Shown here: positions 351 through 61,794 of the stretch, one piece after another
How the letters are laid out: the number at the start of each line of letters is the position of its first letter
Position numbering within the stretch: the first letter of the stretch is position 1
Origin: Geosiphon pyriformis uo1
Taxonomy: Eukaryota; Fungi; Glomeromycota
Direction of reading: 5' to 3'
NCBI GenBank assembly: GCA_016748015.1
Contig: JAAOMT010000503.1
Coordinates: 732,305-796,304 of the forward strand
DNA: 64,000 nt
Notes under the pieces: generated by a model
What the model saw: only the letters and a program-made list of their open reading frames with translations
Databases searched by the model: none
What the model was told of the DNA's origin: nothing
Made by a program: the position numbers and the translations under genes

Positions 351-2239
351 ATGAAAAAGAGCAGCTAATAATATTTAAAAGTCACAAAAGAAACAGAAAG
401 AAAGACATGATAGTCAACTACTAGACAAACCAGTGGAATTCAAGATTGGAGACAAAATACTCTTACATCATACCAAAGCAGAAAAACAATGAAGTGGAAA
501 ATTTGACCCCAAATGGGATGGACTATTTCACATAAAAAAAATTCTAGGAAATAGAGCTTACAAATTAAAACTGAATAACAAAATTTTAACCAAAGCAGCA
601 CATGGAGATTGACTGAAACCATACCACAACATTACACTACCATCTACCAGTAATATTCCACAATTAGGAGTACAGAGAATACTAGTCCAACCAGATAAAA
701 TTCCACGAAATCTGGAACCAATTGTTATTATTAACAACAACATGTTAAATTGATCCATTAAAAGAATATATAAAGACATAGTAGATACAACAGAAAATAT
801 CAGAAAAATGGAAATTACAGACAACATTCACTCACTAGCACAACAACTCTTTCAATTAATCCAACACCAGGAAATGGAGATTACAATCAATCAACAAACC
901 ATTTGATATCAAGATACTAGAAAGACATTTCAACTCAGAACACAGAGGAAAACTGAAAATACTGTGGACAAAATTATGGCAAAAGTAAAATTAGCAATAA
1001 GAGAGTCGACAAAAGAGGCACTATATCAAGAGTTGACTAAAGAAACTTGGAATTGGTGGATACAACAATTTCCAAGAAACTATTGTTATTTTTACTTGGG
1101 ACAACACATAAATATCCAGAATCTATATATGGATAAAACAAAGCAATTATTTGACAAAAGAATACTACAACAATTAGAACATTTTGTGAGAAAGAACAAC
1201 TTATCCACACAGGCCCGAGCCATATACCAAATACACACAGCATTTTAGGATAGATCAGAAATATTACTCAACAAAGCAATGGATATGGTTACCAGTAATC
1301 AATTAGGAAAGATCACCAATACTCAATTTGAAGAATTACAGACCCAAATAACACAAGTAATTCTCAAAAACAAAATCCAGGAAATACTTCAAGAGGGTGA
1401 ATTAAATAAGTTGGATTTTGATGGAGCTCAATATTAAAAGGAGAAAATAATGTTACTCATAGAAATATAGAAAATATATTAGCAGGAGTAGTAACCAATT
1501 AAAAGTAGACATAGTAAATATGGAATTTCAGGATTCCCTGATGAGGAATTGCAGGATTCCAGAATTCCAGGATTCTTCTCAAAGGAATTGCAGGATTCCA
1601 GAAATTTCAGAATTCCTGTCGTGAAGAATCAAGGAATTGAGAAATCTCAATTATGTATATATAGCAGCAGAATTAGAAGCTAAAAAGAGAGACCTCTCAG
1701 TGTAGATTAATCTAAGCAACCTTCCAATTCTCAATTATCAAATAAATAATTATTTTATATCTTAATCCACTCTCAATTATTAACACTTCATGTTGATAGT
1801 AATTGATACTTAACCATACTGGAACAATAGTTTTTGATCATGGCTATTGACGAGATACTAACTTACCAAATTGTCTTGGCTTATCTTTATTATCATTATT
1901 TTCTTTATTTTATTTATTTCTTTCTTTGATTCTGTTGTGTTTACTAATTGATTGGGGATTAAAAGTGCTGAGTTATTGATGTTATGGATAGCTTGGTAAA
2001 AGACCCAGAAATAAGAATAGATTTATATATATTATCAGTTAGCTTACCAAAAGGACACAACTACCAGAATAAATCTGGCCACCAAGCTAAGACTATCAAA
2101 TCTCTGTCTATTATACAAAAGACTCCATCAAAACCTTCAGATACAACACTTTCATAATATCATTGACAGAAATAGCTTTTGAGCACTAAGTTATGGGTTT
2201 GTTATTTGACTTGAGACTCCAAATAATTCAACTATAACA
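351..2239 (+). mobile_element. Gypsy family A copy A1, 3' part: integrase C-terminus, unknown domain (742-1437), PPT, 3' LTR (1451-2239)
   Basis: Closely matches 51310-53239. GPF-type integrase tail, ORF end DGAQY*, purine tract before TGTTACTCATAG, LTR ends ACTATAACA. Confidence 0.9.
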
Positions 2240-4731
2240 ATGCAACAGAAGACTTCAGAAAAATGAAAATTACTGACAACATCCACTCACCGGCACAATA
2301 AATTTTTCAATTGATTCAACAACAGAATATGAAAATTACTATCAATTAACAAATCATTAAATACCAAAATATCAAAAAGATATCCAAATACAAAAGTTAA
2401 AGAAAAACAGAAAACACTATCAACAAAATAATTCTAAAAATAAAATTAGCAATAAAAAAATCAACAATTGTCACCACATATCAAGAGTTAACCAAAGAAA
2501 CTTGGAAATAGTAAATACACAAATTTCCAAGAAACTTTTGTTATTTCCACTTGAAATAACACTTGAATATTCAGAATTTATACATGGATAAAACAAAATG
2601 ATTATTTGACACAATAATATTGCAACAACTAGAACAATTTGTGAGCAAAAACAATCTAACAACACAAGCAAAAGTCATCTATCAATTGCATGCTGGATTC
2701 CAAAACAGATTGGAAATTTTACTCAATCTGAAAATAGATTCCATTACAGTTAACCAAATGGGAAAAATAACCATCACCCAATTTGAAGAATTACAGAACA
2801 AAATAACTCAAGTAATTCTTGAAAAAAAAGTTCAAGAAATACTCAAAAACAGAGAATTAGAGTCAGAAGATTTGGGAAATCTTGATGGAGCTCAATATTA
2901 AAAAAGAGGAAATAATATTACTCATAGAATATAGGAAATATATATTAGCATAAATTAGCCAATCAGAAATAATTATAGTAAATATGGAATTCCAGGATTC
3001 CTCTCAAGAGGAATTGCAAAATTCCAGGAATTTTAGGATTCTCATATAAAGAATTACAGAATTCCAAAATTCCAGAATTTCTCTCAAAAGAAATTGCAGG
3101 ATTCCAAAAATTCCAGGATTCTTGGTGTGAGGAATTGAGGAATCGAAAAATTTCAATTATGTATATATAGCAGTAGTATTAAAAGGAGAAAAAAACAGAA
3201 TCTTTTAATTAGAAATCTCTTAGTTTAGATCTAATCCAAGCAATCTTCTATTCACAATTATTAATAAATAATTATTCATTATTGCAATTCACTTTTCACT
3301 ATTAACACTTTATGTTGATAATAATTGATACTTGACCACATGGAAATAATAGCTCTTGATTATGACTATTGATAGGATACTAACTTGTAATTGCTTTTAC
3401 TCATTTTTTTTTATTCCTTTATTTTTTTTTATTTCTTTTGTTATTTCTTTGGTTTTACTAAATTGATTAAGAATTAAGCACTAAGATACAAATGTTATAG
3501 GAACTGGTAAAAAATCCATGAAACAAGAGTAGAACACTTATAGATTTGAGGATAGTTTACCAGGAGGATTACCAGTCACCATGCTGTTACAGGATGGTTT
3601 TTTTGGTATATTTTAATTGTTGATCTTCCGTTTTAATTGCAATTAGTCTCTCATAAGTTTCTCTATTTTATATGTTGGATATTAATGATAATGTACTGAA
3701 GGTTTTCTCTTGATGTTGTAATATAAGTCTTCTCTTTAATTCTAATTGTCTTTGTATGTTGTGTACTCCTTCCTAAAAGCTAATCTGAAATCTACTTGCT
3801 GTCTGGGGTTTTCTCTGAGGCTATCTTTGCAATTGCCTGATGTGTTTCTCTAATCTAGAAACACAGAATATTAATGGCCTTTTTGCGATTTTTCTAAGTA
3901 TATAATAAAGCTTTTTCAATTTAATTAGTAACCACATAAATAATTTTGATTAAGAATTATTCTTCCAAAGGGTTCAAAGATAGAATGATAGTTTCATTTA
4001 CTAGAGAGTGTATGTGAATTCTATTGTTAATCTCGTAATTGTAATGTTCATTCAATTTATTATTTTTTTTATTAATTCTTTTTGAATAAAATTTTATTTA
4101 GATATTTGTTGCTTTTAGTTGAAGCTTGTTTTATTCTTCATCATTAAAAACTATTGTATATATATATAATTATTGTTTTATAAAATAACATTTTGTAATA
4201 CTCTATTTTTGTTATTTCTAAATAGTGCTTGCTGCTATTATAAAATAGTGCTTGCTGCTTTTGCATAATAGTGCTTGCTGCTATTGCACAATAGTGCTTG
4301 CTGCTATTTGTAAATCATTTCTTTTTTATAATTTGTTGCTGTGCTATTTCATGATTGGCTAATTTATATTATTTATAATTCCTATTAAATTCTTAAACTG
4401 TAATATTATCCCGTCCTTTCAAGATTGAGCTCCATCAAAATTGAAGTTAATTTCTTCATTGAATTCTAAGTTGCTATAGTAGTCCAATACTGTATTATTA
4501 ACTTGTTGTTGTAATTTTTGAAATTTTGAGTTGGTAAGTCGTCCAATACTATTGGTTGTTATTATGTTTATGGTCAAATCCAGTAATACTTTGTGACAAT
4601 TTTCAAATGCTTTGAAAATTCTGTAAACTGCTTTTTAAATTGAATGTACTGTTGGTTTTTTCAATAAAACTTTCTAATTGTTGGATTGTTGCTTTGTCAA
4701 TTACTTTAATTGATGAGTGGATTCATGATTT

Positions 4732-7700
4732 TTACATGTGTCTCATTCTTGACAAACAGTCAGCATTGGCATTTTTGATACCTTCTTTGTATTTGATGAT
4801 ATAATTGTATGGTGCTAATATTTGTGACCATCTGGCATATTTTTCTTTCAGTGCTTTTTTGTTATTTAACCAGACCAGACCTCTATAATCTGTGGTAATA
4901 TCAAAGGATTTGTACTGTAAATATGTGTTAAAGTGAACACAACTCCAGACTACTACTAAGCATTCCAGTTCGTGTGCTGCATAGTTTTGCTCTGCCATAC
5001 TGAGACTTCTATTGACATAAACAATTACATGTTCTCTTCCATTATTATCTTTTTGTGAAAAAATGACTCCAAGTCCAGTTTTAGAGGCATCTGTGGCCAA
5101 AATGAATTTCTTGTTAAAATCCAGATAGATTATTATTGGTGATTCAATGAGCTTTTGCTTAAGGTACTCAAAAGCTTTTTGCTGTATTTTGGTCTATTCA
5201 AATTTTACATTTTTGGATAGTAGATAATTAAGAGGTTTGGTGATGTTTGAAAAGTTTTCTACAAAGCAGCAGTAGTAAGATGCAAGTCCTAAAAAGCTTT
5301 TAACTTCTGAAATGTTTTGAGGTACTGGAAAATTTTTCACTTTGTCTATTTTTGATGGATCTGGTTTTATTCCATCTTTTTTAACTATGTGTCTTAGAAA
5401 TGCTAGCTCATTTTTCCCAAAGAAATATTTTTCTAAATTTAATTTAAGTCCAGCATGTCTCAATCTCTTAAAAACTTGTTGTAAATGTTGGAGATAATCT
5501 GCAAATTTTGGTGAGAAAACATTTGTATTATCCAAATAGACAACAATGGATTGTCACAGGATTCTGGAGTAAATTATGTCCATTAGTCTTTGGAATGTTG
5601 TGAGAGTGTTTATCAATCCAAATGAACTTATAATTGTCATTTTGTGTTGTAAATGCTGTTTTATGTCTGTCTTTTGGGTCTATTTCCACTTGCCAGTATT
5701 CACTGGTCAAGTCAAGTGTAGAAAACCATTTTGCTCTTCTAAAAACATCGAAGATTTTGTCAATTAACGGTATTGGGTATGAGTTTTTGGTTGTTTTGCT
5801 GTTTAGTTTGTAATAGTTGATGCAAAATCTAATTTTTCCGTTTTTTTTCCTTACTAAAACAACTGGTAAGGATCATGGGCTCATTGATAGTTGAATTATT
5901 CTTTTTTTCAACATGCTTTGAACTTTTTCTCTGATAAAATTATGTTCCATTGGTAGAATACATTAAGCACATTTTTTTTTAAGTCTGGCATCTTCAGTGA
6001 AAATTTGGTGTTGAACCAAGTTGGTTCTTCTAAATTTGCCATTTCGTGAAAATATATCAGAATATTTTAAAATTAATGCTTTTAATTGTCACTGTTGGTC
6101 CAGATCTATTGTTTCAATGTTTAATTTGGCCAATTCTTCTGGCGTAAATTGATAGCATTTCAACAGTTGTTGCCAATTTATTGAAGTGAATTCACAGTAA
6201 AGGGCAATTTTTGGGAAATTTAAAATTTCTTGTGGTATTGATGCATTTTCTAGCTCCGTTTCAAGGTATTCTATGATGGTGTTTTCTGGAATGTATATAA
6301 ACTCTTTTGTAGTATTTATGATAGGAATTTTTATCCATTGTGTTTTGTCAGCTGGAATAAAAAGGTTAGTAAGTCCTATGAAAAACTGTTGGCAAGTTTC
6401 TAGGTGAGGCTCAAATATTAGATTTATATCTTTTATTGTCCTTTTTATTTTAATTTCTGATTTTTCATAAGGCGTGAGCATAATTAATTGCTTATTTCTG
6501 ATTAATTCATTTTTCTTCTTTGGCATTTCAATAAAATTTGCTTTAATTCTTTTTCCTGTTAATCTAAAACCATAAATTCCTCTTATTGTTTGTGTCAATT
6601 CCTTTCAATTTTCCACTAGTACAAATTTTCCAACTTTTACTAATGGTAGGAAAATTGCTTGTGTAATCTTCTCCTTAGATTCAATGATATAAGATTTTTC
6701 TGAATTGTTCTGTAGTAAAACCATCAAATTTCCAGTATAGCCGGAGTCAATTACTCCTTCTTGAACATTTATTTCTTTTTTCACAAGGCTTGATTGTGAT
6801 GCTATTTGAACCATTATTTCCAGCAGAATTTCAACTGCTATTTTCAGGTCAATTTTGGTAATGCTCCTGAGTGGTAACGTTGTGGATTGGTCTTTTGGAT
6901 AATATAAATTGAATCCAGCATTGGTTGGATGGGTTTTTTTGGGTATTATTCTTAAGTGCCCGTTGTTAAAGTATTGAATGTCAATCTTTTGTTCTAGATC
7001 AGTATAGGCTATAAATTTTCCTGACTCAGGACTGTCAGATGAGTCTTGTTGATTTATTGATTGATTTTGGTACTGCTGATTCTCAATTTTCATTTTTCTT
7101 GCCAAGTCTCTTTCATATTGACACTCTTTACAGTGCTGACTTTGGCATGGGATAAAACAGTCTTCACAAAGGTAAGTGTTAATCTGGGTGAGATACTGTT
7201 CCTGTTCTTGACAAGTGGAATACAGCTGTTAATAATTTTTCTGGAATTCATTCATTGGGTCAAACATGTTATAGCTGGTAACTTTGTCAGCTATTTCAGC
7301 TGACACTTTTCAAAGTCATATTTCTTTGGCAGTTCCTCCTCTTACTTTGGCTTGTGTAGTGTTGTATAATTTATTCTTGTCATGTAGATAGTGCTGCAGT
7401 CTTCTTAATACTCTGTTGAATGCTGCTTTGAATGGCATTTTTCCTTTTACCCAGTCACAGATAAAAATTGTGTATTGGCAAGTTGCATCACATGTTTTTC
7501 CTTTGCCTGGCATGTTAATCCAGTTACATCCTTTTGGTAATGGTTCTTCACAAGTGAGACACAGTTCTTCATCCCATTTTCTGTGTCTTTCTGGGTAACC
7601 ATATTTTTCTTTGTTACAATGATTACAATAGTAGTGAGTGGGATTTCTTGGATCTTTGTTTGGTGTGCTGCATGCAATTATGGACAAGAGTTTCTTATTG

Positions 7701-10700
7701 CAAACTGAACATTCTAGTTTTGGTCTGCATTGTTGACAGTTTCTTTGTGGACTTGCCTGGTTCTATTTGGATCTTCCTTCACTCCTCCAAGTTGATATGG
7801 CTGGTAGTCCTGTTCTTTGGTCATCAGCCCATGAGAGCTGATAAGTTTTGATGACTGGTAGGATTAGATTTTTTTTAAATTTGAAGGTGGGTCTTTGGTT
7901 GGTGCTGGGTTTTTAGAAGTGGCCACATGTGGCTGGAATTCTGGCATGGTGGCCATTATAGCTGATAAAAAGCTCTTGGATGGTCCAGTCTAATGTGGCA
8001 TTGGCTTTTGTTAGCCAGTCATTTCTTACTAACACTTAATATTATGTAGTATCCATTACTAATACTTTTGTAGGTATTATTATGCCATTAATTTCAAAAG
8101 GAAATGAGTCAATTTTGCCATGAGACAGCTTAGTACTTCCATCAACTGTTATAATTTGGGACATTGTGGCATGATCAACTTTGAAACCCAGTTGGTTTAC
8201 TAGTTGAAGCATCACAATGCTTCTGGTGGATCTACTGTTTAAGATAAGTTTGATTGGCATGTTGTTTACTTTTGCTTCCATGTATATAGCAGTGATTGGG
8301 CATTCTTTGTTCAATGCTGCTCCACTAAACATAGCCTCTTTTTTCTCTAATTCAAAAGGAAAAATAGCTGTGAGGCTGCTATCTTTTGTGACAATGGCTG
8401 GTAGTATTGTTTGGATCAAGTTCTGGTTATTGGTAATATTTTTGGTTCTAGGTATGTTACTATTAATATTTCTGAGATTTAAGTTTTCCGATATATTAAG
8501 GTAAGTTGGCTGAAAATTTGAGTAGTTTGAGTAGTTTGTGTTTGTTTGCTAATTAGGTCCTATACAATTAGGATTTCTAGTAATAATCACATTTTGACTT
8601 AATACTGGCTGGCTTCGAAACTCTGGACACCAGTTTGGATTTGAAATCACTGGTCATTGCTGGTAAGTTCTTTGATTTTGGTATGTAGTGGAGTATTGAT
8701 GTGATATTGGCATGTATTGATTTCTGAGCATTTAGGGTGGCATGTAATAATTATTCTCACATGTTTCATGTATCATTCACATTTGATATTAACTAATTAA
8801 ATGTCCTATGTATTTACAAAAATGACAGGCGCACGTTTCTGTTCTGAAGTCCTGGCATAATAAGTGATTATTTTGGCTGCCGCTGAATTCCTGGTTGTGT
8901 CTTTGTGGTGTTTGATATGTGTTATTTCTTCCTGGGTCTGAGATGAGGTAACTTTTTATTTTCTTAGAGAGTTCCTTCCCTAATTGTGTTACTCTTTTTT
9001 CTAATGTTTCTGTCTTGTTTTTCTCCATTACCATGTTAACCATTTGACTATGATTAGCTTTTTTCTCAGCCGATTCAAGGGCTCTGGCAAGTGTAATGGC
9101 TTCTGGTAATAAATTAGGGTGGGCAGGGCATACTTTTTCTAAAATGCTGCTTTTTAATCCTCTAATAAATTGATTTAAAACCTGAGAATTGGTATAGTAT
9201 CCTTGCTTAATTGCTTCAATTTGACAGCAAATTTAATTGAATCAAGCAAAGTATTGGGTAACAGTTTTACCTGTACTTTGCTTGATAGTATTGAATTCGT
9301 TTAATTGAATTATGGTGTTTGGGTTGCTAAAATACTCCAAGAGTGCATTTTTGAATTTGGCAAAGCTTGTGGGTTTTGTTTTCAAGCTTTGATATCATGA
9401 GTTGGCAGTGCCTTTCAGAAAGAAAAGTAACATTTGGATTACTCTTTGATCATTCCAGTTATTTGCCTGGATGGCTTTTTGTGCTTTTTTGAGCCATGTG
9501 TGCATGTCCATTTCTTCTTTCTCTCTTGAAAAATCTGTTAATTGTGCAATATACAGTGTGGCCATTTCATTGTTGTTTCCTGCTGGTGGGTTTATTGGTC
9601 TAAGAGAAGATGGAATGATATTTTCTTGAGTGTTCCTAAAAGTGGCTTCACTTATATCCAGTTTTTCTTCTTAATCATGAGTTTCTTGGTTTTTGGACTG
9701 GCTGCTTGTTTTTTCACTGGTTTCTTCAGATTCCAATTCAGATTTTTCTTCATGGTTTTCAAACCCACTCCGAATTTTGGTTGAAAAAAAGGTTTTTGGA
9801 ATAGCAATGAATATCTTTTTGTGATTGGTATATTTTCCCAATTGCATTGTTTGAGCTTCTCAGTGTAATTAGAAGTTCTCGGTATTTGTGGGGTTAATGT
9901 GAATGATGATGCAGCTCCTAATGAGAGTTGGATTTTATTATCTGGGAAAAAATGGTAAGATCTTTTTTCTGTCAAATGAAGGCATTGTTTCTTTACTGAT
10001 TGCACAATGTTTTTCTTGGGCATTTGGGCAGTGTTACTCATAGAAATATAGGGAATATATATTAGCATAGTTATTAGCTAATCAGAAATAGATGTAGTAA
10101 AATGTGGAATTCCAGGATTTCTCTCAGGAATTGCAGGATTCCAGGAATTACAGGATTCTCACAAGGAATCGCAGGATTCCAGAATTCCAGGATTCCTCTC
10201 AAAGAAATTGCAGAATTCCAGGAATTCCAGAATTCCTGTTGTGAAAAATTGAGGAATTGAGGAATCTTAATTATGTATATATAGCAGTAGGATTAGAAGC
10301 TGAAAAGACAGACCTCTCAGTTTAGATTTAATCTAAGCAACTCTCCAAATCACAATTATCTAATAAATAACTATTTGTTATCTCAAATCTATTTCCACTA
10401 TCAACACTTTATGTTGATAGTAATTGATACTTAACCATACTGAAACAATAGCTCTTGATCATGGCTATTGACAGAATACTAACTTGCAAATCATCTTGGC
10501 TTATTTCTTTTTTTTCTTTATTTTCTTTTCTTTTCTTTATTTTCTTGCTTTGATTTTATTGTTGTTTACTAATTCTATTGAGGATTAATGCATGGGGCAC
10601 TAACATCAGGATAAACGTGACTGGTAAAAAACCCAGAAATAAGGATAGAACACTCAATTGAGGATAGCTTACCAGAAGGAATACTGGCCATCAAGCTAAG

Positions 10701-11290
10701 AAAGAAACTGACGAAACTGCAGTTTCAGGAAGCTATGGATAAAACTATTACCATTGAATCTCTGTTCATTATACAAAGAACTCAACTAAACCCTTCAAAT
10801 ACAAAACCTTCAGATACCAAATCTTCAAATCATCGACAATGAAAATAGCTTTGAGCACCAAGTTATGGGTTTGTTATTTAATCCAACACCAGAAATTGTC
10901 ACCTGTAATAGTGGGTGTTCCTAATTTTTGCTGATTTTCTTGATTAGTTTCTAAATTTTTTTTGGCTTTGTTGGTGCATTCCTTAATGTTTTCTGTGGAT
11001 ATTGGAAAATTTTTATTGGCATATTGCTCAATTTTGCAATAAATGTTGACAATAATCATGGCTATTACTACTTTCTTTGTAATGTATTGTAATAATTCTC
11101 TATACAATCTAAGTTTCGTGTTGTGTAGTTCTTTTTTTCCTATGTGGTAATTTATTCTGGCATTGATATAATAAGTGAGAGCAGATTCTGCTGGACAACA
11201 CCCTTCTGGTAATCCAAGATCACTTTGATTTTGTGTGTAAATAGCATGGCAGAATTCAAGAACAGTAAGGGTAAGGATTTTTGTTACCAC
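4732..11290 (-). pseudogene. Degenerate Gag-Pol polyprotein of element C, interrupted by a solo LTR-A
   Basis: ORF-track fragments 10874-11290, 8789-9043, 8042-8419, 7316-7687, 6605-7105, 6089-6598, 5194-5710 and 4732-5100 fall in canonical domain order, with many stops. Confidence 0.88.
10032..10910 (+). mobile_element. Solo LTR of family A inside the gag region of element C
   Basis: TGTTACTCATAG...ACCTGTAATA with no PBS or PPT. Flanks GCAG and GTGG fit a decayed GCGG TSD. Confidence 0.92.
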
Positions 11291-13048
11291 TTTTGTTTCT
11301 TTTTTTTTAGCAATAAATTATTGCTAATTATTATTTTTTTTTTGATTTTCTTTCTTCATAAGGTTCACCAAATGTTATGGAGGTGTTTTCTTGGTATATT
11401 TTAATTGTTGATTTCTCGTTTTAATTACAATCAGTTTTTCGTGAGTTTTTTTATTTTATGTGTTGAATATTAATGATGATGTACTGAAAATTTTCTCTTG
11501 ATGTTGTGATGTAAATCTTCTCTTTAATTCTAATTGTCTTTGTATATTGTGTATTCTTTCCCAGAGACTAATCTAAAATTTACCTGCTGTCTGGGGTCTT
11601 CTCTGAAGCTATTCTTGCAATTGCCTGATGTGTTTCTCTAATCTAGAAACATGGAATGTTAATAGTCTTTTTGCGATTTCTCTAAGTATATAATAAAGCT
11701 TTTTCAATTTAATTAGTAACCATGTGAATAATTTTGATCAGGAATTATTCTTCCAAAGAGTTCAGAGATGGAATGATAGTTTCATTCACTAGAGAGGGTA
11801 TGTAAATTCTATTATTAATCTTGTAATTATGATATTCATTCAATTTATTATTTTTTTTATTAATTCTTTTTGAATAAAATTTTATTTATATATTTGTTGC
11901 TTTTAGTTGAAGCTTGTTCTATTCTTTATCATTAAAAACTATTGTATATATATATAATTATTTTACAAAATAACATCTTGTAATACTCTATTTTTATTAT
12001 TTCTAAATAGTGTTTGCTGCTATTGTGAAATAGTGCTTGCTGCTTTTGCATAATAGTGCTTGCTATTATTGTAAAATAGTGCTTGCTGCTATTGTAAAAT
12101 AGTGCTTGCTGTTATTTGTAAATTATTTTTTTTTTATAACTTGTTGCTGTGCTATTTTATAATTAGCTAATTTATATTATTTATAATTCCTATTAAATTC
12201 TTGAACTGTAACAATGCTGAGAAAGAAATTTGATGAAACTGCAGTTTCAGAAAGCTATGGATAAAACCATCAATTAAATCTCTGTCCATTATACAAAGGA
12301 CTCAACCAAAACCTTTAAATAAAAACAAAGTACCAATATTACTAACATCATCCACCAGATTAATTATTGAGCACCAAGTTACGAATTTGTTATTTGATTT
12401 GAAACCCCAAATAATTACTTGTAACAATGTCAACAAGAGAATCACAAATTTTCTAGAAAGACCAATTGACATTGAATTAGCAAGAGAAAATTTTTATACA
12501 AAGTTAATCTAACATACCAGCTTATCATAGAATTACAGTTTTGCACCAATTATTAAAGAAATTAATTAAAAAATTGAAAAATACACTCAACAACAATTTC
12601 TTATTACCTATGCAAATAAGGATAAAAAAAAATTACAAACACCAGCAGTAATACCAAGAAAAATACAATTACCAACATAGAAGAAACAAAAAATTGAATT
12701 CCCACTATATCCATCATATCATCACACATCCAGTAGTATTATTAACATCTCAACAGATGCATCCACATCAAACACAACATCAACATTTGGACAACTTCCA
12801 TTTCAAAGTAAACAAAAGAAAGTAGAATTATTAGGAATTTATAGCAATTACTTTGAAGGATTTAAATTGTGATCCCCAATGCTATCAGAATTCCAATCAC
12901 TACCACCTCAACCAGATTTTAGAACTGCAAGTTCCTGAGAGATAACAGTGTTACCTGAGTAGAAAAACCAAAAAGCTATGAAAAAACGTGACTAAGAAAT
13001 GTAACAAAAAAAACGTGGTACAACTCGAGGTAACACAGAACAAATATG

Positions 13049-13170
13049 AGCAATAGTTAGCAATAACAAATAATAACTAGCAATAATGAGCAATAGCTAG
13101 CAATAATAAGCAATAGCTAGTAATAATAAGCAATAGCTAGCAATAATAAGCAATAGCTAGCAATAATAAA
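13049..13170 (+). repeat. 20-bp tandem repeats (GCAATAGCTAGCAATAATAA) in U3 of LTR-D; also at ~15440-15580
   Basis: Directly visible upstream of the TATA-like TGTATAAAAG. Confidence 0.85.
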
Positions 13171-21888: not shown

Positions 21889-21921
21889 AAAAACATTTCA
21901 ACCAAAAAATATAATAAAAAG

Positions 21922-39477: not shown

Positions 39478-39519
<42 letters not shown>

Positions 39520-43224: not shown

Positions 43225-43385
43225 AGTAAATGTGGAATTCCAGAATTCCTCTCAGAAATTGCAGGATTCCAGGAATTTCAGGATTCCCAACAAAGAATTG
43301 CAGGATTCCAGAATTCCAGGATTTCTTTCAAAGGAATCGCAGGATTCCAGGAATTCCAGGATTCCTGTCATAAAGAATTGAGGAA
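43225..43385 (+). repeat. GGAATTGCAGGATTCCAGGAATTCC-type short repeats in U3 of LTR-A (present in all A LTRs)
   Basis: Visible upstream of the TATA-like TATATATAG; copy number varies between LTRs. Confidence 0.8.
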
Positions 43386-44019
43386 TTTTAATTATGTATA
43401 TATAGCAATAGTGTTAGAAACAGAAAAGACAGAATTGATACCACAGAATCCTTAACCTAGAAACACAATTATCAAATAAATAATTATTTCATATCTCAAA
43501 TCCATTCCCCACTATCAACCCTTCATGTTGATAGAAATTGATACTTAACCATGCTGGAACAATAGCTCTTGATCACAGCTATTGACGGAATGCTAATCTG
43601 CAAATTGCCTTGGCTTATTTCTTTGCTTTTTTTATTTTTTTTTATTTTTTTTTTCTTATTTTATTTTTGATTTGTTGTTATATACTAATTGATAAAAGAT
43701 TAAGCGCTGAGTTATTGATGTTAAGGATAGCCTGATAAAAGATCCAGAAATACAGGTAGGATTTTATATATTATCGGATAGCTTACCAGAAGGGCATGAC
43801 TGCCAGACTAAATCCGGCCACCACGCTGAGAAAGAAATTGGGAAAACTCTTGGAAAATATATCTACTATCGACATTATTGAATCTCTGTCCATTATACAA
43901 AAGACTCAACCAAAACCTTCAGATACAGCATCTTCAGAACAGTCTCAATGAAAGTAGCTTTTGAGCACCAAGTTATGAGTTTGTTATTTAATTCAAAGCA
44001 GAAATAATTACCTGTAACA

Positions 44020-44037
44020 TTTGGTGCTCTCTGTGAG
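44020..44037 (+). promoter_or_regulatory. Primer-binding site of family A, shared with family D (13921-13939)
   Basis: TGG start 2 nt after the LTR, complementary to a tRNA 3' end ...CUCACAGRGAGCACCA. The tRNA is not established; elongator Met or Ile are candidates. Confidence 0.8.
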
Positions 44038-44081
44038 ATATAATCTTACAGAGAACCAGCACCAACAACACCAAACCAAAA

Positions 44082-47000
44082 GTGGCAGAATCAGAAATTA
44101 TAGGAGCAAACCATTTAGGATTTGCAAAATCTTTATTTCAACACTATTGTCAATACTTGGAATTAAACCACAATCATATATCTACTGAATTAATCTTCAA
44201 TTTTTACGTCAACGAAAAGATTTCCTTTTTATTAGGAACACTAGTGAATACTGAATCAGCAAGAGAAACTTTCTATAAAGAATTAATTCAAAACACCAAC
44301 CTACCAACAAATCATAATTTTGCATCCATCATTACTGAGATCAACAAAGAAATTGAACACCACACTCAACAAAAATATCCAATTACATATGCTAATAAAG
44401 GCAAAGGATAATTACAAACACCAGCAGTAACACCCAGAAAATTACAGCCACCTGCTTGGAAGAAAAACAGAGTTGAATCCCCAAGCAATCCATTCTACCA
44501 CTATACACCTGGAAGCACCATCAACATATCATCAACCGATGCGTTCTCATCAACTGCAACATCAGCATTTGGACGATTCCCATTCCAAAGTAGACAAAGA
44601 AAAACAGAATTGTTAGAACCATATGGTGAATACTTTAAGGGATTTAATTTGTGATCATCAACCCCATCAGGACTTCGATCACCACCGCCTTCACCAGATT
44701 TCGGAATCTCTGATCTGTGGGAAGCAGCAGAATCAGAAAAAGAGGAAGAAGAATTAGAGGATCAAGAATTTACTTACCAAAACCCAATTACTGAAAGCCC
44801 AGAAGTTGAAACCCTGAATCTTCAAGCTCAGCAAAATTTAAATATAGACAATTTGAAAATCGAAACTCCGAATCAGCAAAGACAGAACAATCCAAAACCT
44901 GAATTAATTAATTAGCAAAACTTACCTCTGATAATCGTCATTGATCAACCGCTGATTAATCCAGTAGCTGAACCTATACAACAGCCACTTCAACTACCAC
45001 CCCAACAACTACTTCAACAGCCACCACAACCACCTAACTTAAACCCAATGGCCTATGCACCCATCGCAAAACTTGACAACTTTACTGGTGAAGAGGATGA
45101 TGCTCAAGTATGGCTGAATAATGTAGAAAAGACCATCACAGCCAACAGATGGAATAATGTCCGAGCCATGCAAGCCATTCCCTACTTTCTCAAGAATACT
45201 ACCAATTTATAGTATCAGAGCTTGGTTAATAAACCACAAGATTTCAATGCCTTCAAAGTGGAATTCCTAAGATACTTTAGCAACAACAATAGCATCAATT
45301 GCCTAGTCAATACATTTACCACCATGAAACAAGAAGAAACTGAAGCAGTCACCACTTACCTGGGATGCTTCCATCGAAACTTGTGCCAAATTCAAGCAAT
45401 TGACAACGACTATTTCACAGCACCACAGATACTCAACCAGTTTATCCATGGCTTACGCAGCAGCATCTTGCAACATGTACATCTGTTGTATTCTGGTATG
45501 CTTCAAGACACAGTCACACGTGCCAGAGATTTTGAATCTACTGAGTTAGAGGCTAATCATGTCCAAGCCGTTAATCTAGTAATGAACGGATCATCTGAAT
45601 TGGATTCTAAATTGGAGAAGTTCAGTGAATCAATCAATAAGAGATTGGAAGGATACTTAGCTGACAATTACGCCATTTATCAGTCTTCACAATGACACAA
45701 TAACCAAGAACATCCTAATCGTGGCCAAAATCAACCATGTCCATCTTCATCAACCAATCAATAGTGACAACAGGAAATGCATATCTGCCACTATTGTGGT
45801 AACCAAGGACATATCCAAATTGACTGTCACCAGCATTTAAATAACCAATGATTAGGAAATCAATATCGAAACCCCGATCGCTGGTTTCAAACTCCGAATC
45901 ATTATCCAAATCAAAGTCAAGACCAATATTGGAATAATTACCTGCCAATGACGCAGCAACCAATCTATCAACCGCCAGTATATCAACCTCCGATTTATCA
46001 GCTGCAGCCACAAGTAATATATCAACCACAGCCACAAATTATCTATTAACCCCAACCAATTCAAACACTACCCCAGAACCCAGCTCAAATGACATCAGGC
46101 AACCCTCAATCCAGAATCACTCAAAACTGGAGATCAGCAATGGTTGTTCACCAACCAATTCCCCATTCACTAGATCCACCATCAAGATCACACACCTAGA
46201 ATTTGGATACCAGTCATGTCCAAAACCCAAATTCCCAACATTATTTAAGTCTCCTGGTTACCCCAGAAAATGCCACATCTAACAACACAGAATCCCATCA
46301 GCATGTACCTACCAACACAATTTCACCAGCAACCATCTTTAGCGACGAATCCCTAGCAGCTATCTTTCCTTTTAAACTTGAAGAAAACACACTAATACCA
46401 TTATTCAGTGGAGCTGCCCTCGAAGAGAAACCTATAACAGCAATGTACACGGATGCCAGAGTTAATGGTCATCTCATCAAACTCATCCTAGATAGTAGAT
46501 CAGCTGGCAGCATAATCACATGACAACTCATGGATCAATTAGGTCACTGAGTTGATCAAGCTGCCAGCGCCAGAATTATCACAGCTGACGGAGTGACCAA
46601 AACTCCAATCGGTGAAATTGACGAGTTTCCTTTTGAAGTCAATGGCATCGTGACTTCTATTAAAGTTCTAGTAATAGAAGCCACTCAATACCAAGCTCTC
46701 GTTAGTAATAACTGGCTATCAAAAGTCAACGCAATGTTAGACTGGAACACCCAGGAACTCCAGCTAATGTATTAGGGCCAACACATATGTGTTCCGGCCA
46801 CATGTGGCCACTTCAAAACACCTCCAAGAGAAAAACTATTGATCGAACTGGAGGAGGAGAAAGAAAAGCCTACCAAGTATTGTGGGCTGACGAAGAGCAC
46901 AATGAGCTGCCACCAATACTCTCCTGGGACGACAACAACAAGAAAAAAGGGAAACAAAAAAAAGAACTTACCTGGAAAACCGATAACCTGACATGGACCG

Positions 47001-50000
47001 ACAACAATGAGAGCAAACCGACTTCAAGCTGGAAATGGGAAGAAGACAAAGAAAATAAAGGGAAAGGAAAAGAAAAAGAGACCACTCAAACCACTACCAC
47101 TTATAACACCCACACTATACCACAACAATCTACCTATCGTCGACCTAAGCTTATATGCGTCGATTGCAGTAAGAAATTGTCGTCAATGGGCGCATGCTGT
47201 GGCGACAATGAGGAATACCACACTACAACAAAATTCTACTGTCATCCATGCTTATTCGAATGCTTTGGACGACCAAAAAGACAAGAAAAATGGGATAACC
47301 AACCTTGTCTCGCTTGTGGGGAGACCTGCTAGATGAAGAAATGTGGAATGACATCTCAGGATGTAGAGAAACATGTAATGTATTGTGTCAATACACAATT
47401 CTAATAAGCAACTGGGTAAGGAAAGAAACCTCAATGGAAGCAGTCTGGCAAAGAGCCGTACAGCAACTAGACAGTTGTCCACATGATGACGATAAAATAT
47501 GGCAAATGGCACTTGCCAAAATTGAAGGGGCGATGCCAGAAGAGATAAAAATGATTAAAGACAACCCCCCAGAACTTTTAGAGCTTGACTGGGATGCAAA
47601 ACCCATCATAAACCTCCTGGATCTAGAACAATTCCACGAACACTACCAAGAATTAGCACCCACAAGGGAAGAACAAAAACAACGATTAAAGCAGTTGAAT
47701 GCTCGACTATGTTAACACTGCCTAATTCCCTGTGACTTCTAGTATTGTGATGAGTGTGACCTCATCTACAATCTACCACCACGCATGATCTACTTGATCC
47801 CTGAAGAAGAAGAACCAATCAGCAGCTGTGCATCAGAATCAGAATCGCCAATCAATTGTGATTCAAACTCTGACGATGACGACGATAACAATGGTTCAAG
47901 CTCTATTCAAATTGGCAATGATGACAAAAACAATTTAGACTCAGATTTAAAACCCAATGTAAACTATGAACAATACATTGCACTACCAGATCTCTCCAAG
48001 GAACAAGAGTTGAAATGGTATAGTGACAATAGGGAAGGTATTATGCCAGAACGTGCACATAACACAGATGCAGGGTTTAATCTGAGATATCCAAGAAAAG
48101 ATGTCATCAAATTAGAACCGCATTCATGCACCTGCATTGATCTGAAAATAGCACTAGAAATTCTGGCAACAACAATGGTTCAATTAGCATCTAGGAGTAG
48201 TTTAGCAAAAAGAGGGATCAATATAAAAGGAGGAATAATTGACATGGGATATGTAAGAAATATTATCGCTATGCTACAAAATGACTCAGAAAAAGCCTAT
48301 ATAATAGAGCCCAACAAAAAGATAGCACAGGCAATATTCCTGCCTCTGATTAGAGTAGCTCAGTTACTGTCAGTGGGAAAGAGGGAGGAATTGGGAATAA
48401 CAGCAAGGGGAATACAAGGATTTGGATCAACGGGTAGAATAGAGATATCAGTTAATATGATGAAGGAAAAAATTGTTGGCCAAGGAGAAATTATCTCAAC
48501 TGGTCAAGCTATTTCCATTCCACCATATAGCCAGTACATGTTAGCAATAGAAAGAAAGGAAAAGGAGCAAGAACAGATTTTTGAAGTGGAAGCAACCCTT
48601 TGTGAATTAGGAGAGATTGGGTTGATCAATCTCTACATACTAGCCAAAAGCTATAACAGCATAAAAATTCCCATCTACAACAACACTGGCAATATTATCA
48701 ACATACCAGAAGGAACCACCATCGGATATTTAATCACAGAAATAGAAGACCAATTACCAAACTCCATTCCAGACTTTCCACAACTTTGTGGATATGTTGA
48801 CATTACATCACAAACAATCTATGGACAAGACAAATGTTATTTGCTCCAACTAGAACAATTGGAACAAATGAACATGGGAAACTTAGATTCACTCCAATGT
48901 ATGCAGTTCAAGATGTTACTTAACAATTTCAATGACATCTTTGCCAGTGAAAATGAGTTTGGCCAAACTGACATTATCCAGCATCAGATTAAGACTGAAG
49001 ATGCAATGCCAATTAAACAAAAAGCATACAAAGTGCCACCAGCCAGCCACAAGATTATTCGTCAAGAGATAAACAGAATGCTTAACAATGGATTAATTCA
49101 ACCATTAATGAGTCCATGGTCATTACCAGTGGTACTCGTCCATAAAAAAAATGGAAAAATCTAGTTTTGTGTAGACTACAGGAAACGCAATGGTGTAACT
49201 CGTGGAGACAGTTATCTAACTCCACGAATACAGAAATTATTCGATGCTTTCGGTGGGAACAAATGGTTTTCCACATTAGATTTGAACAGTGATTACTGGC
49301 AAGTAGCCATGAATTCAGCTGACAAGGAGAAGACGGCATTTACTACTAGAGAAGAGAATTTTGAATTTAAAGTAATGCCATTTGGCTTAACCAATGCCCC
49401 AGCAACTTTCCAATGGCTAATGGAAATTGTTTATACTGGCTTATTGTGGAAATTAGTAGTTATATACTTGGACAACACCAATGTATTCTCAAAGACATTT
49501 GATAATCATCTTCATCATTTTCAACAAGTGTTTGAAAGACTAAGAAGAGCAGGACTAAAGTTAAATGTGACAAAGTGCTTCTTTGGCAAAACAGAACTCA
49601 AATTCTTGGGACACATAATCAGCAAAGACGGCATCAAAACAGATCCAGAAAAAATAGAGATAGTAAAGAACTTTCCAGTACCGACCAATATAACAGAACT
49701 GAAATCATTCTTGGGATTTACCAGTTACTATCGTCATTTTATCAAGAATTTTTCCAAGATAGCACAGCCATTCAATTAACTGCAAAACAAAAATGCGAAA
49801 TATGAATGGACAGAAAGTCAACAAAAAGCTTTTGATATTCTGAGGAAAAAGCTCATCTAAGCTCCAGTACTGATCTATTCAGATTACAGCAAACCATTCA
49901 TTATCACTACCAATGCATCCAGTCAAGCATTGGGAGCAGTATTATCTCAGAGAAGACTGGATGGCAGAGAACATCCAGTAGCATATGCCAGCAGAGGTTT

Positions 50001-50268
50001 AACACCAGCTGAAAAGAACTATGAAACACCGGAACAAGAACACTTAGCAATATACTGGGCTGTCATGAAATGGAAAGAATACTTGAGCCAGAAGTTTGAA
50101 GTATACACAGATCACAAGGAATTAACATCACTCCAAAAACAAGAATTTGGAGATGGAAGACAGTCAAGATAGAAAATGGCACTCGCACCATACAAGTATA
50201 CTATACATTACAAAAAAGGAAAAGACAACAGAAATGCTAATGGTTTATCGCAAATAAGACAAATTTAA
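44082..50268 (+). pseudogene. A4 polyprotein: N-terminal extension, capsid, CCHC knuckle, aspartic protease, Cys-rich domain, dUTPase, dUTPase-like relic, RT, RNase H
   Basis: FTGEEDDAQVWL; CHYCGNQGHIQIDC; LILDSRSAGS; DAGFNL/ASRSS/GGIIDMGY/KIAQAIF/RGIQGFGSTG; VMPFGLTNAPATFQ, YLDNT; RNase H ending NANGLSQIRQI*. Two small frameshifts at ~46870 and ~47325. Confidence 0.93.
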
Positions 50269-50331
50269 GAACATTTCAACCCAAAAATATAATAAAACCA
50301 GAACAATACCAATAGAAAAATACAACAAAAG

Positions 50332-52396
50332 ATGAACATACAAAAATATCAACAATTACAACATTATTTAAACACTCAACAATTCAAGGAGAATTTATCT
50401 CATACGGAACAAAGGAGTATCAAATACCAATTAAAATATTTCATCACTCACCAAAATATATTTTATCAGAAAAATAGAAGGGATCTAGATCAACCAATCA
50501 AAGTAATTATGGAGCCAGAAAAAGAGACAATATTATTCAATATGCACTCAAATCCAACAGCAGGACATTTTCACAAAGAAGCAACCATAGAAAGAACTAG
50601 AAAAAGATACTATTGGTCATTAATGTACCCAGACATCATTCAATATGTTCAAAATTGTGACGCTTGTCAGCAAAGAGGAGGAACAAGACCCAGTAAACCA
50701 TTAAGACCAATCAAAGTGGAACAACCATTTGATCATATGGGAATTGATTTAGTAGGACCATTAACAATCACCAGCAGAGAAAACAGATACATAACAGTAG
50801 CTATGGATTATCTTACTAAATGGCAGAGACAAAAGCAATTCAAAGAGCGGATGCAGAATCCATTGCCAAATTCATTTATCAGGATTTAATTTGTCGACAT
50901 GGATGTTCAAAAGAATTATTATCAGACCAAGGAACTCATTTTGTGAACAGAACATTAACAGAATTGAGCCAAAAATTCGGAATCAAGAGACCATTATTAT
51001 CATTATACCATCCACAAACCAACGGATTAGTAGAAAGATTTAATAGAACATTGTGTGAAGCAATAGCCAAGCTCAGCCAAAAAAACCAGAACGATTGGGA
51101 TTTGTTCATACCATCAGTACTATTTGCTTATTGGACAACGAAACAAGATACTATACAAGCAATACCATTTAAATTAGTATATGGGAGAATAGCAACATTA
51201 CCAGTAGAGAGAAAAATTAATACATATCCAGCTGAACCAATAACAGAGAAAAATTTTTAAGAAACATTGCTGAGAAAAACATATGACTTAATGAAAACAT
51301 TGGAAAACAAACAAAGAAGAGCAGCTAATAATATCCAAAAATCACAAAAAACACAGAAAGAAAGACACGATAGTCAACTACCAGACAAACCAGTTAAATT
51401 CAAAATCAGAGACAAAGTATTACTACATATACCAAAGCAGAAAAACAATGGAGTGGAAAATTTGACCCCAAATAGGACGAACCATTTCACATAGAAGAAA
51501 TTCTAGGAAATGGAGCTTACAAATTAAGATTGGATAACAAAATTTTAACCAAAGCAGCATATGGAGATCAACTAAAACCATATCACAACATCACACTACC
51601 ATCTACCAGTAATATTCCACAATTAGGAGTACAGAGAATACTAGTCCAACCAAATAAAATTTCATAAGATTGGGAACCAATCATTATTATCAACAACAAC
51701 ATGTTAAATTGATCCATCAAAAGAATATATAAAGACATAGTAGATGCAACAGAAAATATCAGAAAAATGGAAATTACAGACAACATTCACTCACTAGCAC
51801 AACAACTCTTTCAATTAATCCAACACCAGGAAATGAAGATTACAATCAATCAACAAACCATTCGATATCAAGATACTAGAAAGACATTTCAACTCAGAAC
51901 ACAGAGGAAAACTGAAAATACTGTGAACAAAATCATGGCAAAAGTAAAATTAGCAATAAAAAAATTGACAAAAGAGTCACTATATCAAGAGTTGACTAAA
52001 GAAACTTGGAATTGGTAGATACAACAATTTCCACAAAACTATTGTTATTTTTACTTAGGACAACACGTAAATATCCAGAATCTATATACAGATAAAACAA
52101 AGCAATTATTTGACCAAGGAGTACTACAACAATTAAAATATTTTGTGGAAAAGAACAACTTATTTACACAAGCCCAAGCCATATACTGAATACACACAGC
52201 ATTTCAAGATAAACCAGAAATACTGCTTAACAGAGCAATGGATCTGGTTACCAGTAATCAATTGGGAAAAATCACCAATGCTCAATTTAAAGAATTACAG
52301 ACCCAAATAACACAAGTAATTCTCAAAAACAAAATCCAGAAAATACTTTAAAAGGAAGAATTACATGAGTTAGATTTCGACGGAGCTCAATATTAA
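50332..52396 (+). pseudogene. A4 integrase (HHCC, DDE, GPF) plus in-frame ~230-aa unknown domain (51701-52396)
   Basis: Own ATG after the RNase H stop. HSNPTAGHF...CDACQ, GIDLVGP, LSDQGTHF, NGLVERFNRTL. Ends DFDGAQY* next to the PPT. Confidence 0.9.
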
Positions 52397-55300
52397 AAGG
52401 AGAGAATAATGTTACTTATAGAAATATAAGAAATATATTAGCATAATTATTAGCATAATTATTAGCCAATTAAAAGTAAGCATAGTAAATATAGAATTCC
52501 AGGATTCCTCTTAGGAATTGCAGGATTCCGATTTCTCTTAAAGGAATTGCAGAATTCCAGGAATTCCAGGATTCCTGTCATGAAGAATTGAGGAATTGAG
52601 GAATCTCAATTATGTATATATAGCAGTAGTGTTAGAAACAGAAAAGACAGAATCGATACCACAGAATCCTTAACCTAGAAACACAATCATCAAATAAATA
52701 ATTATTTCATATCTCAAATCCACTCCTCACTATCAATCCTTCATGTTGATAGAAATTAATACTTAACCACGCTGAAACAATAGCTCTTGATCACAGCTAT
52801 TGATGGAATACTAATCTGCAAATTGCCTTGGCTTATTTCTTTGCTTTCTTTATTTTTCTTTTATTTCTTTTTTTCTTATTTTATTTTTGATTTGTTGTTA
52901 TATACTAATTGATAAAAGATTAAGCACTGAGTTATTGATGTCAAGGATAGCCTGGTAAAAGACCCAGAAATATGGGTAGGATTTTATATATTATCGGATA
53001 GCTTACCAGAAGGGCACGACTGCCAGACTAAATCCGGCCACCATGCTGAGAAAGAAATTGGGAAAACTCTTGGAAAATATATCTACTATTGACACTATTG
53101 AATCTCTGTCCATTATACAAAGGACTCAACCAAAACCTTCAGATACAGCACCTTCAGAACAGCCTCAATGGAAGTAGCTTTTGAGCACCAAGTTACGGGT
53201 TTGTTATTTAATTTAAAGCAGAAATAATCACCTGTAACAACAAGCAATTCTTGGGAAAGAGTTGACATTTACTACAATGTAACTATACAAAGTAACTGGC
53301 ATGGAATTGGTCATTTCACTTATAAGCCCAGCAGTTCAAATTATAAGAGATAATTTGAAGATAAATTCAGTTACTGAAGGTTCAACCACATCCAAAAAAC
53401 GTGAATTCACAGCAAACAAGCATCGACAACATTTAAGAAAAGAGACCAAAAACCTTCGGTAACACTGTACACAGCTTTTATCAAATATGAGCACAAATTC
53501 GAAGTTTTCTGACCAGTAAACTCAGTAAGCATATGAGAGTCTGGATGCCAAATTTTTGTGGTAGAAATCCAGTCTATACACCCAACAAGATCAACAGGTA
53601 TCATACTCACACCAGGCCCAGCCTCTCAGTCAGCATGATTAATAGATCAAAAAATGTCCCTTACAAAGTGGCAGGCATTATCAGGGATTGCCATGTTTTC
53701 AGCCATCAAATAACACTCATAAACTCCAACCAACAAAGAGAAGGAAGATCAAGCAGCTTCCTCAGCTGCCAAATTAGCCTTGACATACCCAAAATGCCAG
53801 AATGGCCTTTAACTTTAACCCAGACCATCTTGAGATCTTTTTCCCTAATCAGATTGAAAATATGGTGTCTTTCCAACCAGCACCAATTATGAATCAGGCA
53901 TGGCACAAGACAACTTTGACAAGCAGACATCAATAGCAGCTTGGCTATTAGTATGCAAAATCACTTGACAAGAGGAAGGTACACACTCAAGAGCCAACAC
54001 AACAGCCTACAACTCAGCTAGAGTAGAGAATAATAGACCACCAACCACAACACCAACACTTCTATCTAAAACCAGAAAATACACAGCAGCACCACAAGCA
54101 GCATCAACCAAGCCAGCATTTCTCAAAGATCCATCAGTATACACCTCAAAGCAACTAGACCAGATATCATGCAACCCATCTTTTACCAGAGAAAACACCT
54201 CAGAATCTAAAATGTTTGTATCAACAGACTGAGCAAAACCAGCAGAACTGGAAGCAGAAAAGCCTTAAACCAACATAAACTCAGATGCGACTGAGAACCA
54301 ATAAGGCACAGGGCCCCATGGGTCCAACTTTTTCCAACAACAAAAGATTTTCCAATCTAGCACATGGTCTCTCTTATCCAAAATCCGATCACCAAAAGCA
54401 ACCCCAAAACACTTCAGAAAGCAAACAGAATTAAAATACTCAGAACTACCTAGAATTGACAAAAGTGGAAAACAACCTGGACTGTGAAAGGCATTGGGAA
54501 GGTTGTTAGCCAAAGAAAGCTTATTACTCAAAAAAATTTTTGCAATCCCAGCCAAAAAGTTGTTGACTGGACTAACACACAACTTGACAGGAAACTGCAA
54601 AGAATCCAGAGAAGCCCAGCCAAGAATCTGCAAGTCCAAAAACCTATAATTGAACAAACGCCCAAGGATCCCAGAGGCATTAGAAAAAGACACCAAAGCA
54701 GCAATTTTCCCTTCAGATTGCACTTGTTCAAAAGTTTTCAAGCCATACAAAGAAGAGTGATGTAAGGCAGCATCCAGAAAATTACAAGGCAAACCAGCTT
54801 TGAACTTAAGACCCTTTTTAACCATAACATCCTATTTGCAATAAACACCAGATAAAACAAAACTAAATTGAGTCTAGTAACTAACTATAGGCTGCAAGAC
54901 AGCTGAGACCAAATACGAGAACTGTTTATCTGTAATAGCCTTCCTGAGCATGATGTTGACAAAAAAACGAACATCAGAATAAGCTTTAAACACACTAGGT
55001 TTAGAAAAACCCTCCGTAGACAAGAAGATATCCAGATAATAATGAGCTTTGCCCTTTTTAGCAATCAAGATTGGCTGACCACAAATACTCAGAGAGACAA
55101 TCCTAACACCCTGGTTAATGGGAATAGTTACCGTCTTATCATTATTAATAGAAATATCATTGATTTTGAAGAATTTACTGGCAATGTTCAGAGCATACTG
55201 AGTGAAGGCCTGACAATTTCCAATCCAAATTGTATCATCGACGAATGCACCAGCCGCCAAGTAAAACATCATCCCACCCACACCCTCAACTCTGCCCATC

Positions 55301-61380: not shown

Positions 61381-61387
61381 GTTTTAA

Positions 61388-61436
61388 CAATAACAAGAAC
61401 AACAACAATAACAACAACAACAACAACAACAACAAC

Positions 61437-61470
<34 letters not shown>
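61388..61470 (+). repeat. Compound (AAC)n(AAT)n microsatellite
   Basis: Directly visible. Confidence 0.9.
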
Positions 61471-61794
61471 TATATATAAATTATTTTAATTTTTGTTTTG
61501 TTAAATTTATATTTTAATAAATATTTTTAACAATAAAAAATCTGATAAATATATTTTTTTTATTTTAATAATTTTGCCATAATTTATATATATATATATT
61601 TATTTTAATATATTTTAATTTTATCAAAATGTTCTTATAAATTGGAATAATAATTATAATTTGATTAATAGCTTTGTCTTTCAGAAAAAAATTAATTTTA
61701 TGTAATTCAAGCTATTTATATACATGTCCATTTTATCGATAAAATATAATCTCACAATTAATATAAGCACAATTTTTTAGAATTTTATGTACAA

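Follow-up and report, generated by a model that had tools for sequence, protein, structure and literature searches.

The stretch of DNA analysed here, referred to as the window, comprises 64,000 nucleotides of the glomeromycotan fungus Geosiphon pyriformis uo1 (GenBank assembly GCA_016748015.1, contig JAAOMT010000503.1, positions 732,305 to 796,304 of the forward strand; all window coordinates below count from its first letter). Self-comparison of the window revealed a nest of long terminal repeat (LTR) elements belonging to four LTR families (A to D), which have in common the termini TGTTAC...GTAACA, a primer-binding site (PBS) beginning TTTGGTG... and a purine tract ending in ATAA. Insertions of these elements, in the window and at further loci, are flanked by target-site duplications (TSDs) of 4 bp that are almost always centred on a pyrimidine-purine (YR) step. 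At this central step CpG is in excess over matched controls and has since decayed, while TA and true TG targets are used as well.

At the left edge of the nest, a B-like LTR end on the minus strand (1-350), which matches 42413-42771 in reverse, lies inside A1 and runs past the window edge; its terminus GGTAACA is followed by the right flank ATGA (351-354). A1 is the 3' part of a family-A element (351-2239, plus strand) matching A4 at 51306-53240, with a 3' LTR at 1451-2239, a polypurine tract upstream of 1451 and the right flank ATGC (2240-2243), and it sits inside A2. The left piece of A2 (2240-3584, plus strand) holds internal region and the start of the 3' LTR (from 2916), and its right piece (12214-12426, plus strand) holds the LTR end, with the right flank ATGT (12427-12430) within A3. 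Between the two pieces, element C (3585-12213, minus strand) was inserted into the A2 LTR; it has LTRs at 3585-4405 and 11373-12213, TGTTAC...GTAACA termini, a reverse-complement PBS ahead of 11373 and the TSD ATGC (3581-3584)/ATGC (12214-12217). C in turn contains a solo family-A LTR (10032-10910, plus strand) with the TSD GCAG (10028-10031)/GTGG (10911-10914). Where TSD copies differ, they were restored by preferring C over T and G over A, and this pair restores to GCGG. A3 (12427-24829, plus strand) is a family-A element without its 5' end, in which 16429-24830 matches 44850-53240; its 3' LTR spans 24001-24829 and its right flank is ATGT (24830-24833). A3 is interrupted by D, a short derivative (12949-16358, plus strand) with LTRs at 12949-13920 and 15339-16358, a PBS after 13920, a polypurine tract before 15339 and the TSD ACAG (12945-12948)/ATGA (16359-16362), which restores to ACGG. 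Tandem or direct repeats occupy the interior of D at 14045-14713.

Farther to the right, the full family-A element A4 (43163-53239, plus strand) has LTRs at 43163-44019 and 52410-53239 that are 93.9% identical, and its TSD ATGA (43159-43162)/ACAA (53240-53243) restores to ACGA. It separates the halves (42414-43162 and 53240-53464) of B, a solo LTR (42414-53464, plus strand) with the TSD CTGT (42410-42413)/CTGT (53465-53468). The joined halves align over their full length with the B-like 5' LTR of another locus, L006, and the terminus GGTAACA is followed by CTGT. A right end of B at 42986, with an odd GTAAA end, was considered and rejected, as the alignment with the L006 LTR puts the end at 53464. 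All nine insertions, with their TSDs and single right flanks, lie where an earlier note on this DNA had placed them. LTR boundaries were set independently of the flanks because the PBS and polypurine tracts fix them, and the phase of the 4 bp is fixed because perfect TSDs exist.

The elements are Ty3/Gypsy retrotransposons with the arrangement gag-protease-dUTPase-reverse transcriptase-RNase H-integrase, and the four LTR families would represent one lineage. Pfam matches follow the order Retrotrans_gag/Ty3_capsid, Asp_protease, dUTPase, RVT_1, RT_RNaseH, Integrase_H2C2, rve and SH3_Tf2-1. A4, the best-preserved copy in the window, supplies gag, dUTPase, reverse transcriptase and integrase; protease, RNase H and the SH3-like integrase C-terminus were recognised in better-preserved copies at other loci. 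Thirteen full elements have the TGTTAC...GTAACA ends, the PBS TTTGGTGCTC and an A/G-rich tract ending in ATAA. The integrase aligns with that of Ty3 (PDB 7q5b; 5e-31, including the SH3-like C-terminal domain) and with the integrase of prototype foamy virus (PFV; 3e-24, zinc-binding and catalytic core domains). No chromodomain match was found in the integrase open reading frames (ORFs) or the ORF downstream of the integrase, in decayed copies of which only stop-free pieces were scanned, and no env-like Pfam match occurred among the scanned ORFs, in which no search was aimed at env. The dUTPase ORF is 77-85% identical to many G. pyriformis proteins. Its domain lies at 47785-49164 (plus strand) of the window, between protease and reverse transcriptase, a curious presence where repeats carry many C-to-T changes. 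Rhizophagus irregularis DAOM 197198 has integrases of about 48% identity (P0140, P0145, P0162, P0172), as do many metagenome contigs, and the lineage therefore extends beyond Geosiphon.

At all nine window sites the central dinucleotide of the target is TG or CA, which has a chance probability of ~2e-8 and is not a boundary artefact. Three of the TSD pairs (A4, the solo family-A LTR and D) are discordant, TG in one copy and CA in the other, and are best read as CG decayed on opposite strands; for ATGA/ACAA an ancestral ACGA is the best explanation because changes between LTRs are mostly C-to-T and G-to-A transitions. Paralogues of the targets point in the same direction. The two CG-keeping paralogue strings named in the earlier note lie exactly at 43821, where the A4 5' LTR has ACGC at the position of the C target, and at 44204, where A4 has ACGT (44206-44209) at that of the A2 target (12427). 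A paralogue of the D site in locus L005 still reads ACGG. Site 351, in family-A DNA, has ACGA paralogues in L009 and L006 and also ACAA and ATGA, and the A4 site is ACAA, ATGA or ATAA in other B-like LTRs. Site 2240, where A1 entered A2, had been taken as a true ATGC from window paralogues alone, and this was overturned by ACGC paralogues in L003, L004, L006 and L009. No paralogue was found for the A3 target (24830-24833). Of the nine targets proposed to have been N-CG-N, seven thus have positive evidence of CpG from discordant copies or CG paralogues, and B (CTGT) and the A3 flank (ATGT) may or may not have been CG. One family-A LTR position (...CACC|4 bp|TGA...) was used twice, by C (3581-3584/12214-12217) and by a family-A element in L009 (5056-5059/15247-15250), and resembles a hot spot for insertion whose ancestral sequence was ACGC; by our own estimate, two independent strikes at one LTR position have p ~0.01 if any YR step serves.

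The window sites were joined to 27 sites from 12 further G. pyriformis loci (L001-L012, about 21 kb each, centred on homologues of the family-A dUTPase ORF), giving 36 sites on 13 stretches. LTR ends in these loci were placed by similarity and terminal motif. The 12 further full family-A elements have the TSDs GCAT/GTGT, TCGT/TCAT, ATGC/ATGC, CCAA/CCGA, CCAC/CTGC, ATGG/ATGG, CTAC/CTAC, GTAG/GTAG, ATAT/ACAT, GTGG/GTAG, ATGC/GTGC and CTGC/CTGC; an internally deleted outer element in L009 has ATAT/ATAT, and A-, B-, C- and D-like LTRs provided further unpaired flanks. A B-like outer element in L006 has a one-base irregularity at its right end, so that its TSD is ATAG against ATGG or TGGA; this uncertain pair is included in the tallies of 20 pairs and left out of the 17-pair and 13-pair tests, and the 36-site tally uses its left flank only.

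These loci add both CG targets and others. CG is kept in one TSD copy in L002 (TCGT/TCAT) and L004 (CCAA/CCGA), paralogues support CG for the family-A element of L005 (CCGC four times), for the inner element of L009 and for flank L422 in L005, and unrelated repeat families contain CG-type targets as well (L001, L002, L004). Three perfect TSD pairs are centred on TA (L007 CTAC, L008 GTAG and the outer ATAT of L009), and so are 5-6 unpaired flanks. The L008 target has more than 15 paralogues reading GTAG, and TA was therefore the real target there. Four more targets (the family-A elements of L006 and L010, and flanks L1386 in L010 and L3805 in L005) have 5-13 paralogues each, almost all of them TG (GTGG, ATGG, ATGT) and the remainder GTAG or TTGG. 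Neither CG nor CA appears among them, and these are therefore true TG targets. Over the 36 sites, 35 have a central YR step; 12-13 are supported as CG, nine are true or probable TG/CA, five are other TG and 8-9 are TA. The lone non-YR flank is ATTA at L3805 in L005. As 11 of its 13 listed paralogues are ATGG, this target was probably TG-centred and later damaged, but the flank is counted as an exception, the only one among the present-day sequences.

These counts were set against controls of the same kind. For the TSD pairs, the restoration rule was applied to the LTR pairs of the 13 full elements themselves, which equal the TSDs in age and mutational history, and for insertions into family-A DNA the paralogue rule was applied to each YR position of the 13-copy family-A alignment. 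In the control LTR pairs 22.2% of steps are YR, while restorable CG accounts for 1.57% of the total and for 7.1% of the YR steps. The centre is YR in 20 of 20 TSD pairs (p = 9e-14) and in all 13 pairs from loci absent from the original window (p = 3e-9). Seven of the 20 pairs restore to CG (p = 3e-4 against 7.1% of YR), and the extra loci alone give 4/13 (p = 0.011). For insertions into family-A DNA, 7/8 are CG-supported against 20.4% by the same paralogue rule (p = 1e-4), five of the eight being window sites. CpG is thus over-used about 4-5-fold (7.1% against 31-35% of pairs), a preference and not a requirement. The symmetrised logo of the 20 pairs reads V-Y-R-B, with T in 3/40 at position 0 and A in 3/40 at position 3; neither G at -3 nor C at +6 occurs.

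The idea that the four families share an integrase preference for CpG is therefore borne out in part, by the CpG excess that recurs in the extra loci, but CpG is not required, given the TA and true TG targets. The rule for the lineage is widened to a central YR step with CpG favoured, and no new CpG-specific class is defined.

Decay of CpG is evident in the repeats of the window. The window has a G+C content of 31%, and across its repeats CpG is at 0.08-0.2 of expectation, with TpG+CpA in excess (1.2-1.35) and TpA not (0.75); TG and CA together occupy 13.2% of window positions and CG 0.7%. Single-copy DNA is CpG-rich by comparison (observed/expected 0.6-1.1). Differences between the two LTRs of one element (43163-44019 against 52410-53239 in A4, and pairs in the extra loci) are nearly all transitions (e.g. 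63:1, 72:0), only about a quarter of them in CpG context, and C-to-T or G-to-A dominates the changes relative to the family majority. Per copy, C-to-T reaches 28% at CpG and still 8.5-11% at CpA, CpC and CpT, which suggests that an all-context hypermutation, RIP-like (repeat-induced point mutation) or deaminase-like, acts on these repeats. Classic CpA-type RIP was dropped after this context analysis, as the decay is centred on CpG. For the subphylum Glomeromycotina, it has been stated that no RIP signatures were found (PMC8647823). Among restorable CpGs of the LTR pairs, both copies are intact at 20, one copy has decayed at 101 and the copies are discordant at 49, which implies a decay since insertion of ~70% per CpG per copy. 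LTR identity lies at 91.7-94.4% in all 13 full family-A elements and suggests that they stem from one burst. This fits the 'striking expansions of LTRs' described in Geosiphonaceae (PMC11952901).

A non-LTR-like family (RVT_1 match, weak RRM match) has minus-strand copies at 25.6-36.5 and 54.6-59.3 kb of the window, with a similarity of about 65%, and this family is the target of several insertions at other loci. Tested ORFs in the single-copy stretches at 27-30, 37-41.3 and 59.3-64 kb gave no Pfam or homologue match, and no host gene was found in the window that could count as untouched in the sense of the earlier note. Positions 60001-62000 are extremely AT-rich (G+C 11.7%), single-copy and without detectable ORF homology.

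Taken together, the insertion sites are best accounted for, at a probability of roughly 0.7, by a Ty3/Gypsy lineage whose integrase makes a 4-bp stagger, needs a central YR step and favours CG, followed by decay of the CpG. The integrase would cut V-Y-R-B targets centred on YR, the arrangement in which intasomes of the retroviral type bend target DNA sharply, and among YR steps CG would be chosen several-fold above its availability, with TG/CA and TA used too. After insertion, strong C-to-T decay in the host has turned CpGs of the TSDs into TG or CA, leaving discordant copies where it struck opposite strands and concordant copies where it struck the same strand. The integrase itself may read the sequence, bendability being joined by a base-specific contribution of C/G. 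A lead for such target choice, to be taken as a lead only, may be the Thr (ACT) found in 13/13 copies (L006 13112-14386; window about 50.3-51.3 kb) at the integrase position aligned with PFV Ala188 and HIV-1 Ser119, which are named target-base contacts (PMC4422553).

Several points weigh against this account. The sample is small, with all 36 sites on 13 stretches picked around family-A dUTPase ORFs, and the window was pre-selected for the pattern: CG support is 7/9 there against 6/27 elsewhere, the latter a lower bound, and the stronger share in the window is as expected because the window was flagged for it. Concordant TG pairs could derive from CG or from TG, to neither of which they are assignable, and the matched nulls were built from transposable element (TE) sequence rather than from the actual targets available when the elements inserted. 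As a rule, CpG is not counted as the most flexible YR step; bendability alone would therefore fail to explain the CG excess, and the integrase itself would have to discriminate CG from TG or TA.

Could the central YR rule suffice, with the CpG excess coming from the availability of young, CpG-rich TE copies and from selection of the window? The logo is shaped like that of retroviruses with 4-bp TSDs, the CG share is far lower outside the window, and many targets were fresh copies if family A spread in one burst. This nevertheless appears unlikely, as controls matched for age and for the rule of inference still leave the 4-5-fold excess (as do 20.4% against 7/8 in family-A DNA), CG-type targets lie in unrelated repeat families, and one LTR position was used twice. 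The opposite extreme, an integrase specific for CpG or perhaps methyl-CpG with each TG/CA centre a decayed CpG, is more doubtful. It fits the nine TG/CA-centred window sites and the seven with CpG evidence, and it also fits the TG/CA pairs, of which 5 are discordant and 6-7 concordant (C and B in the window, L003, L006, L011, L012 and, if counted, L010), not far from the ~1:1 that CpG decay alone predicts. As an absolute rule it is contradicted by the three perfect TA-centred pairs, the five or six TA-centred unpaired flanks and the four targets with almost all-TG paralogues, and elements at TA- and TG-type targets are as old as those at CG-type ones.

A related idea, hypothetical and quite improbable on present data, is that the integrase or a bound host factor recognises 5-methyl-CpG and so steers insertions into methylated TEs. 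In R. irregularis, CG methylation is concentrated on TEs (PMC8647823). If the preference is simply for CpG, single-copy DNA rich in CpG would be favoured no less than TEs. Discordant TSD copies could also be made at integration itself, if cytosines in the two 4-nt single-stranded gaps were deaminated before repair, which predicts G-to-A on the left and C-to-T on the right. Twelve of 18 TSD mismatches are of this kind and six are opposite, but the 12:6 split falls short of significance (two-sided p ~0.24), the mismatches require no more than the ordinary decay of CpG that follows insertion (~70% per copy), and gap deamination would cover the divergence of the copies only and not the C/G at the centre; it is the least credible of these explanations. 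The preferred account, a YR-requiring and CG-favouring integrase, also bears on the nesting. In family-A DNA ~4.7% of positions are CG-supported, compared with a CpG share of 0.7% in the window as decayed today, so that a CpG-favouring integrase would strike fresh copies of its own lineage disproportionately, and such fresh CpG-rich copies, as favoured targets, may help to build nests without methylation.

Parts of this behaviour are familiar from other systems. Serrao et al. described that PFV, Moloney murine leukaemia virus, porcine endogenous retrovirus and xenotropic murine leukaemia virus-related virus, all with 4-bp TSDs, select central YR, avoid RY and disfavour T at 0 and A at +3, and ascribed the YR selection to the sharp bend that the intasome imposes on target DNA (PMC4422553). 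The Geosiphon elements resemble these retroviruses in stagger, YR and avoidance of T and A, and for PFV in a homologous integrase. In the retroviruses, however, YR rises only from ~22% to ~36%, whereas it is found in 35/36 Geosiphon sites, and the Geosiphon elements differ further in over-using CpG most, in their fungal host and in being retrotransposons in which no env was found.

Within the Ty3/Gypsy superfamily, the errantiviruses of Drosophila and their derivatives have a TSD of 4 bp. Drosophila errantiviruses and their two-ORF derivatives (gypsy, ZAM/Tirant and Idefix subgroups) use the palindromic targets TATA, CGCG and ATAT, that of the ZAM subgroup being CG-rich, and sequence-specific integration is regarded in the same review as exclusive to errantiviruses and derivatives (PMC5408687). 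They share with the Geosiphon lineage the superfamily and a strong local choice of sequence, but their termini are AGT...AnT, with an env ORF besides in the errantiviruses proper, whereas the Geosiphon elements end in TGT...ACA (TGTTAC...GTAACA). In Geosiphon the TSD is likewise 4 bp, but constraint is limited to its two central bases, where CG, TG/CA and TA all serve; CG and TA centres are palindromic, yet TG/CA sites are used too.

The placement of the dUTPase between protease and reverse transcriptase has counterparts in fungal Gypsy elements, namely Postia PosPlaTy3-5 and elements of Phanerochaete and Tuber (Tmt1) (PMC2864245). According to its title, abstract and supplement legends, that paper is about Gypsy elements with a chromodomain, and a 5-bp TSD that it gives, AACAC, is that of SM-Tcn1 from the spikemoss Selaginella. 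The Geosiphon elements have a 4-bp TSD, no chromodomain match and a host in Glomeromycotina. The closest structural relative of the Geosiphon integrase is that of Ty3 of yeast. Ty3 is tethered to RNA polymerase III transcription start sites and has a 5-bp TSD, whereas the Geosiphon elements choose their targets by local sequence.

The central YR rule is thus known from retroviruses with 4-bp TSDs and from fly gypsy-group elements, and what is new is its CpG-biased version in a Gypsy lineage of Glomeromycotina. A fungal TG...CA Gypsy lineage with near-obligate YR and a bias towards CpG would be evidence that integrases can be strongly selective for sequence outside the Drosophila errantiviruses and their derivatives, to which this has been ascribed (PMC5408687), and would offer a natural system in which to ask what besides bendability ranks YR steps for an integrase. 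For annotation under heavy C-to-T decay, TSDs are to be matched with transitions allowed, as discordant TG/CA pairs reveal an ancestral CpG. If the methyl-CpG idea were true, the lineage would build its own nests and spare unmethylated genes. Perhaps the self-nesting has a simple reason: where CpG erodes across the genome, no repeats are richer in CpG than newly inserted copies.

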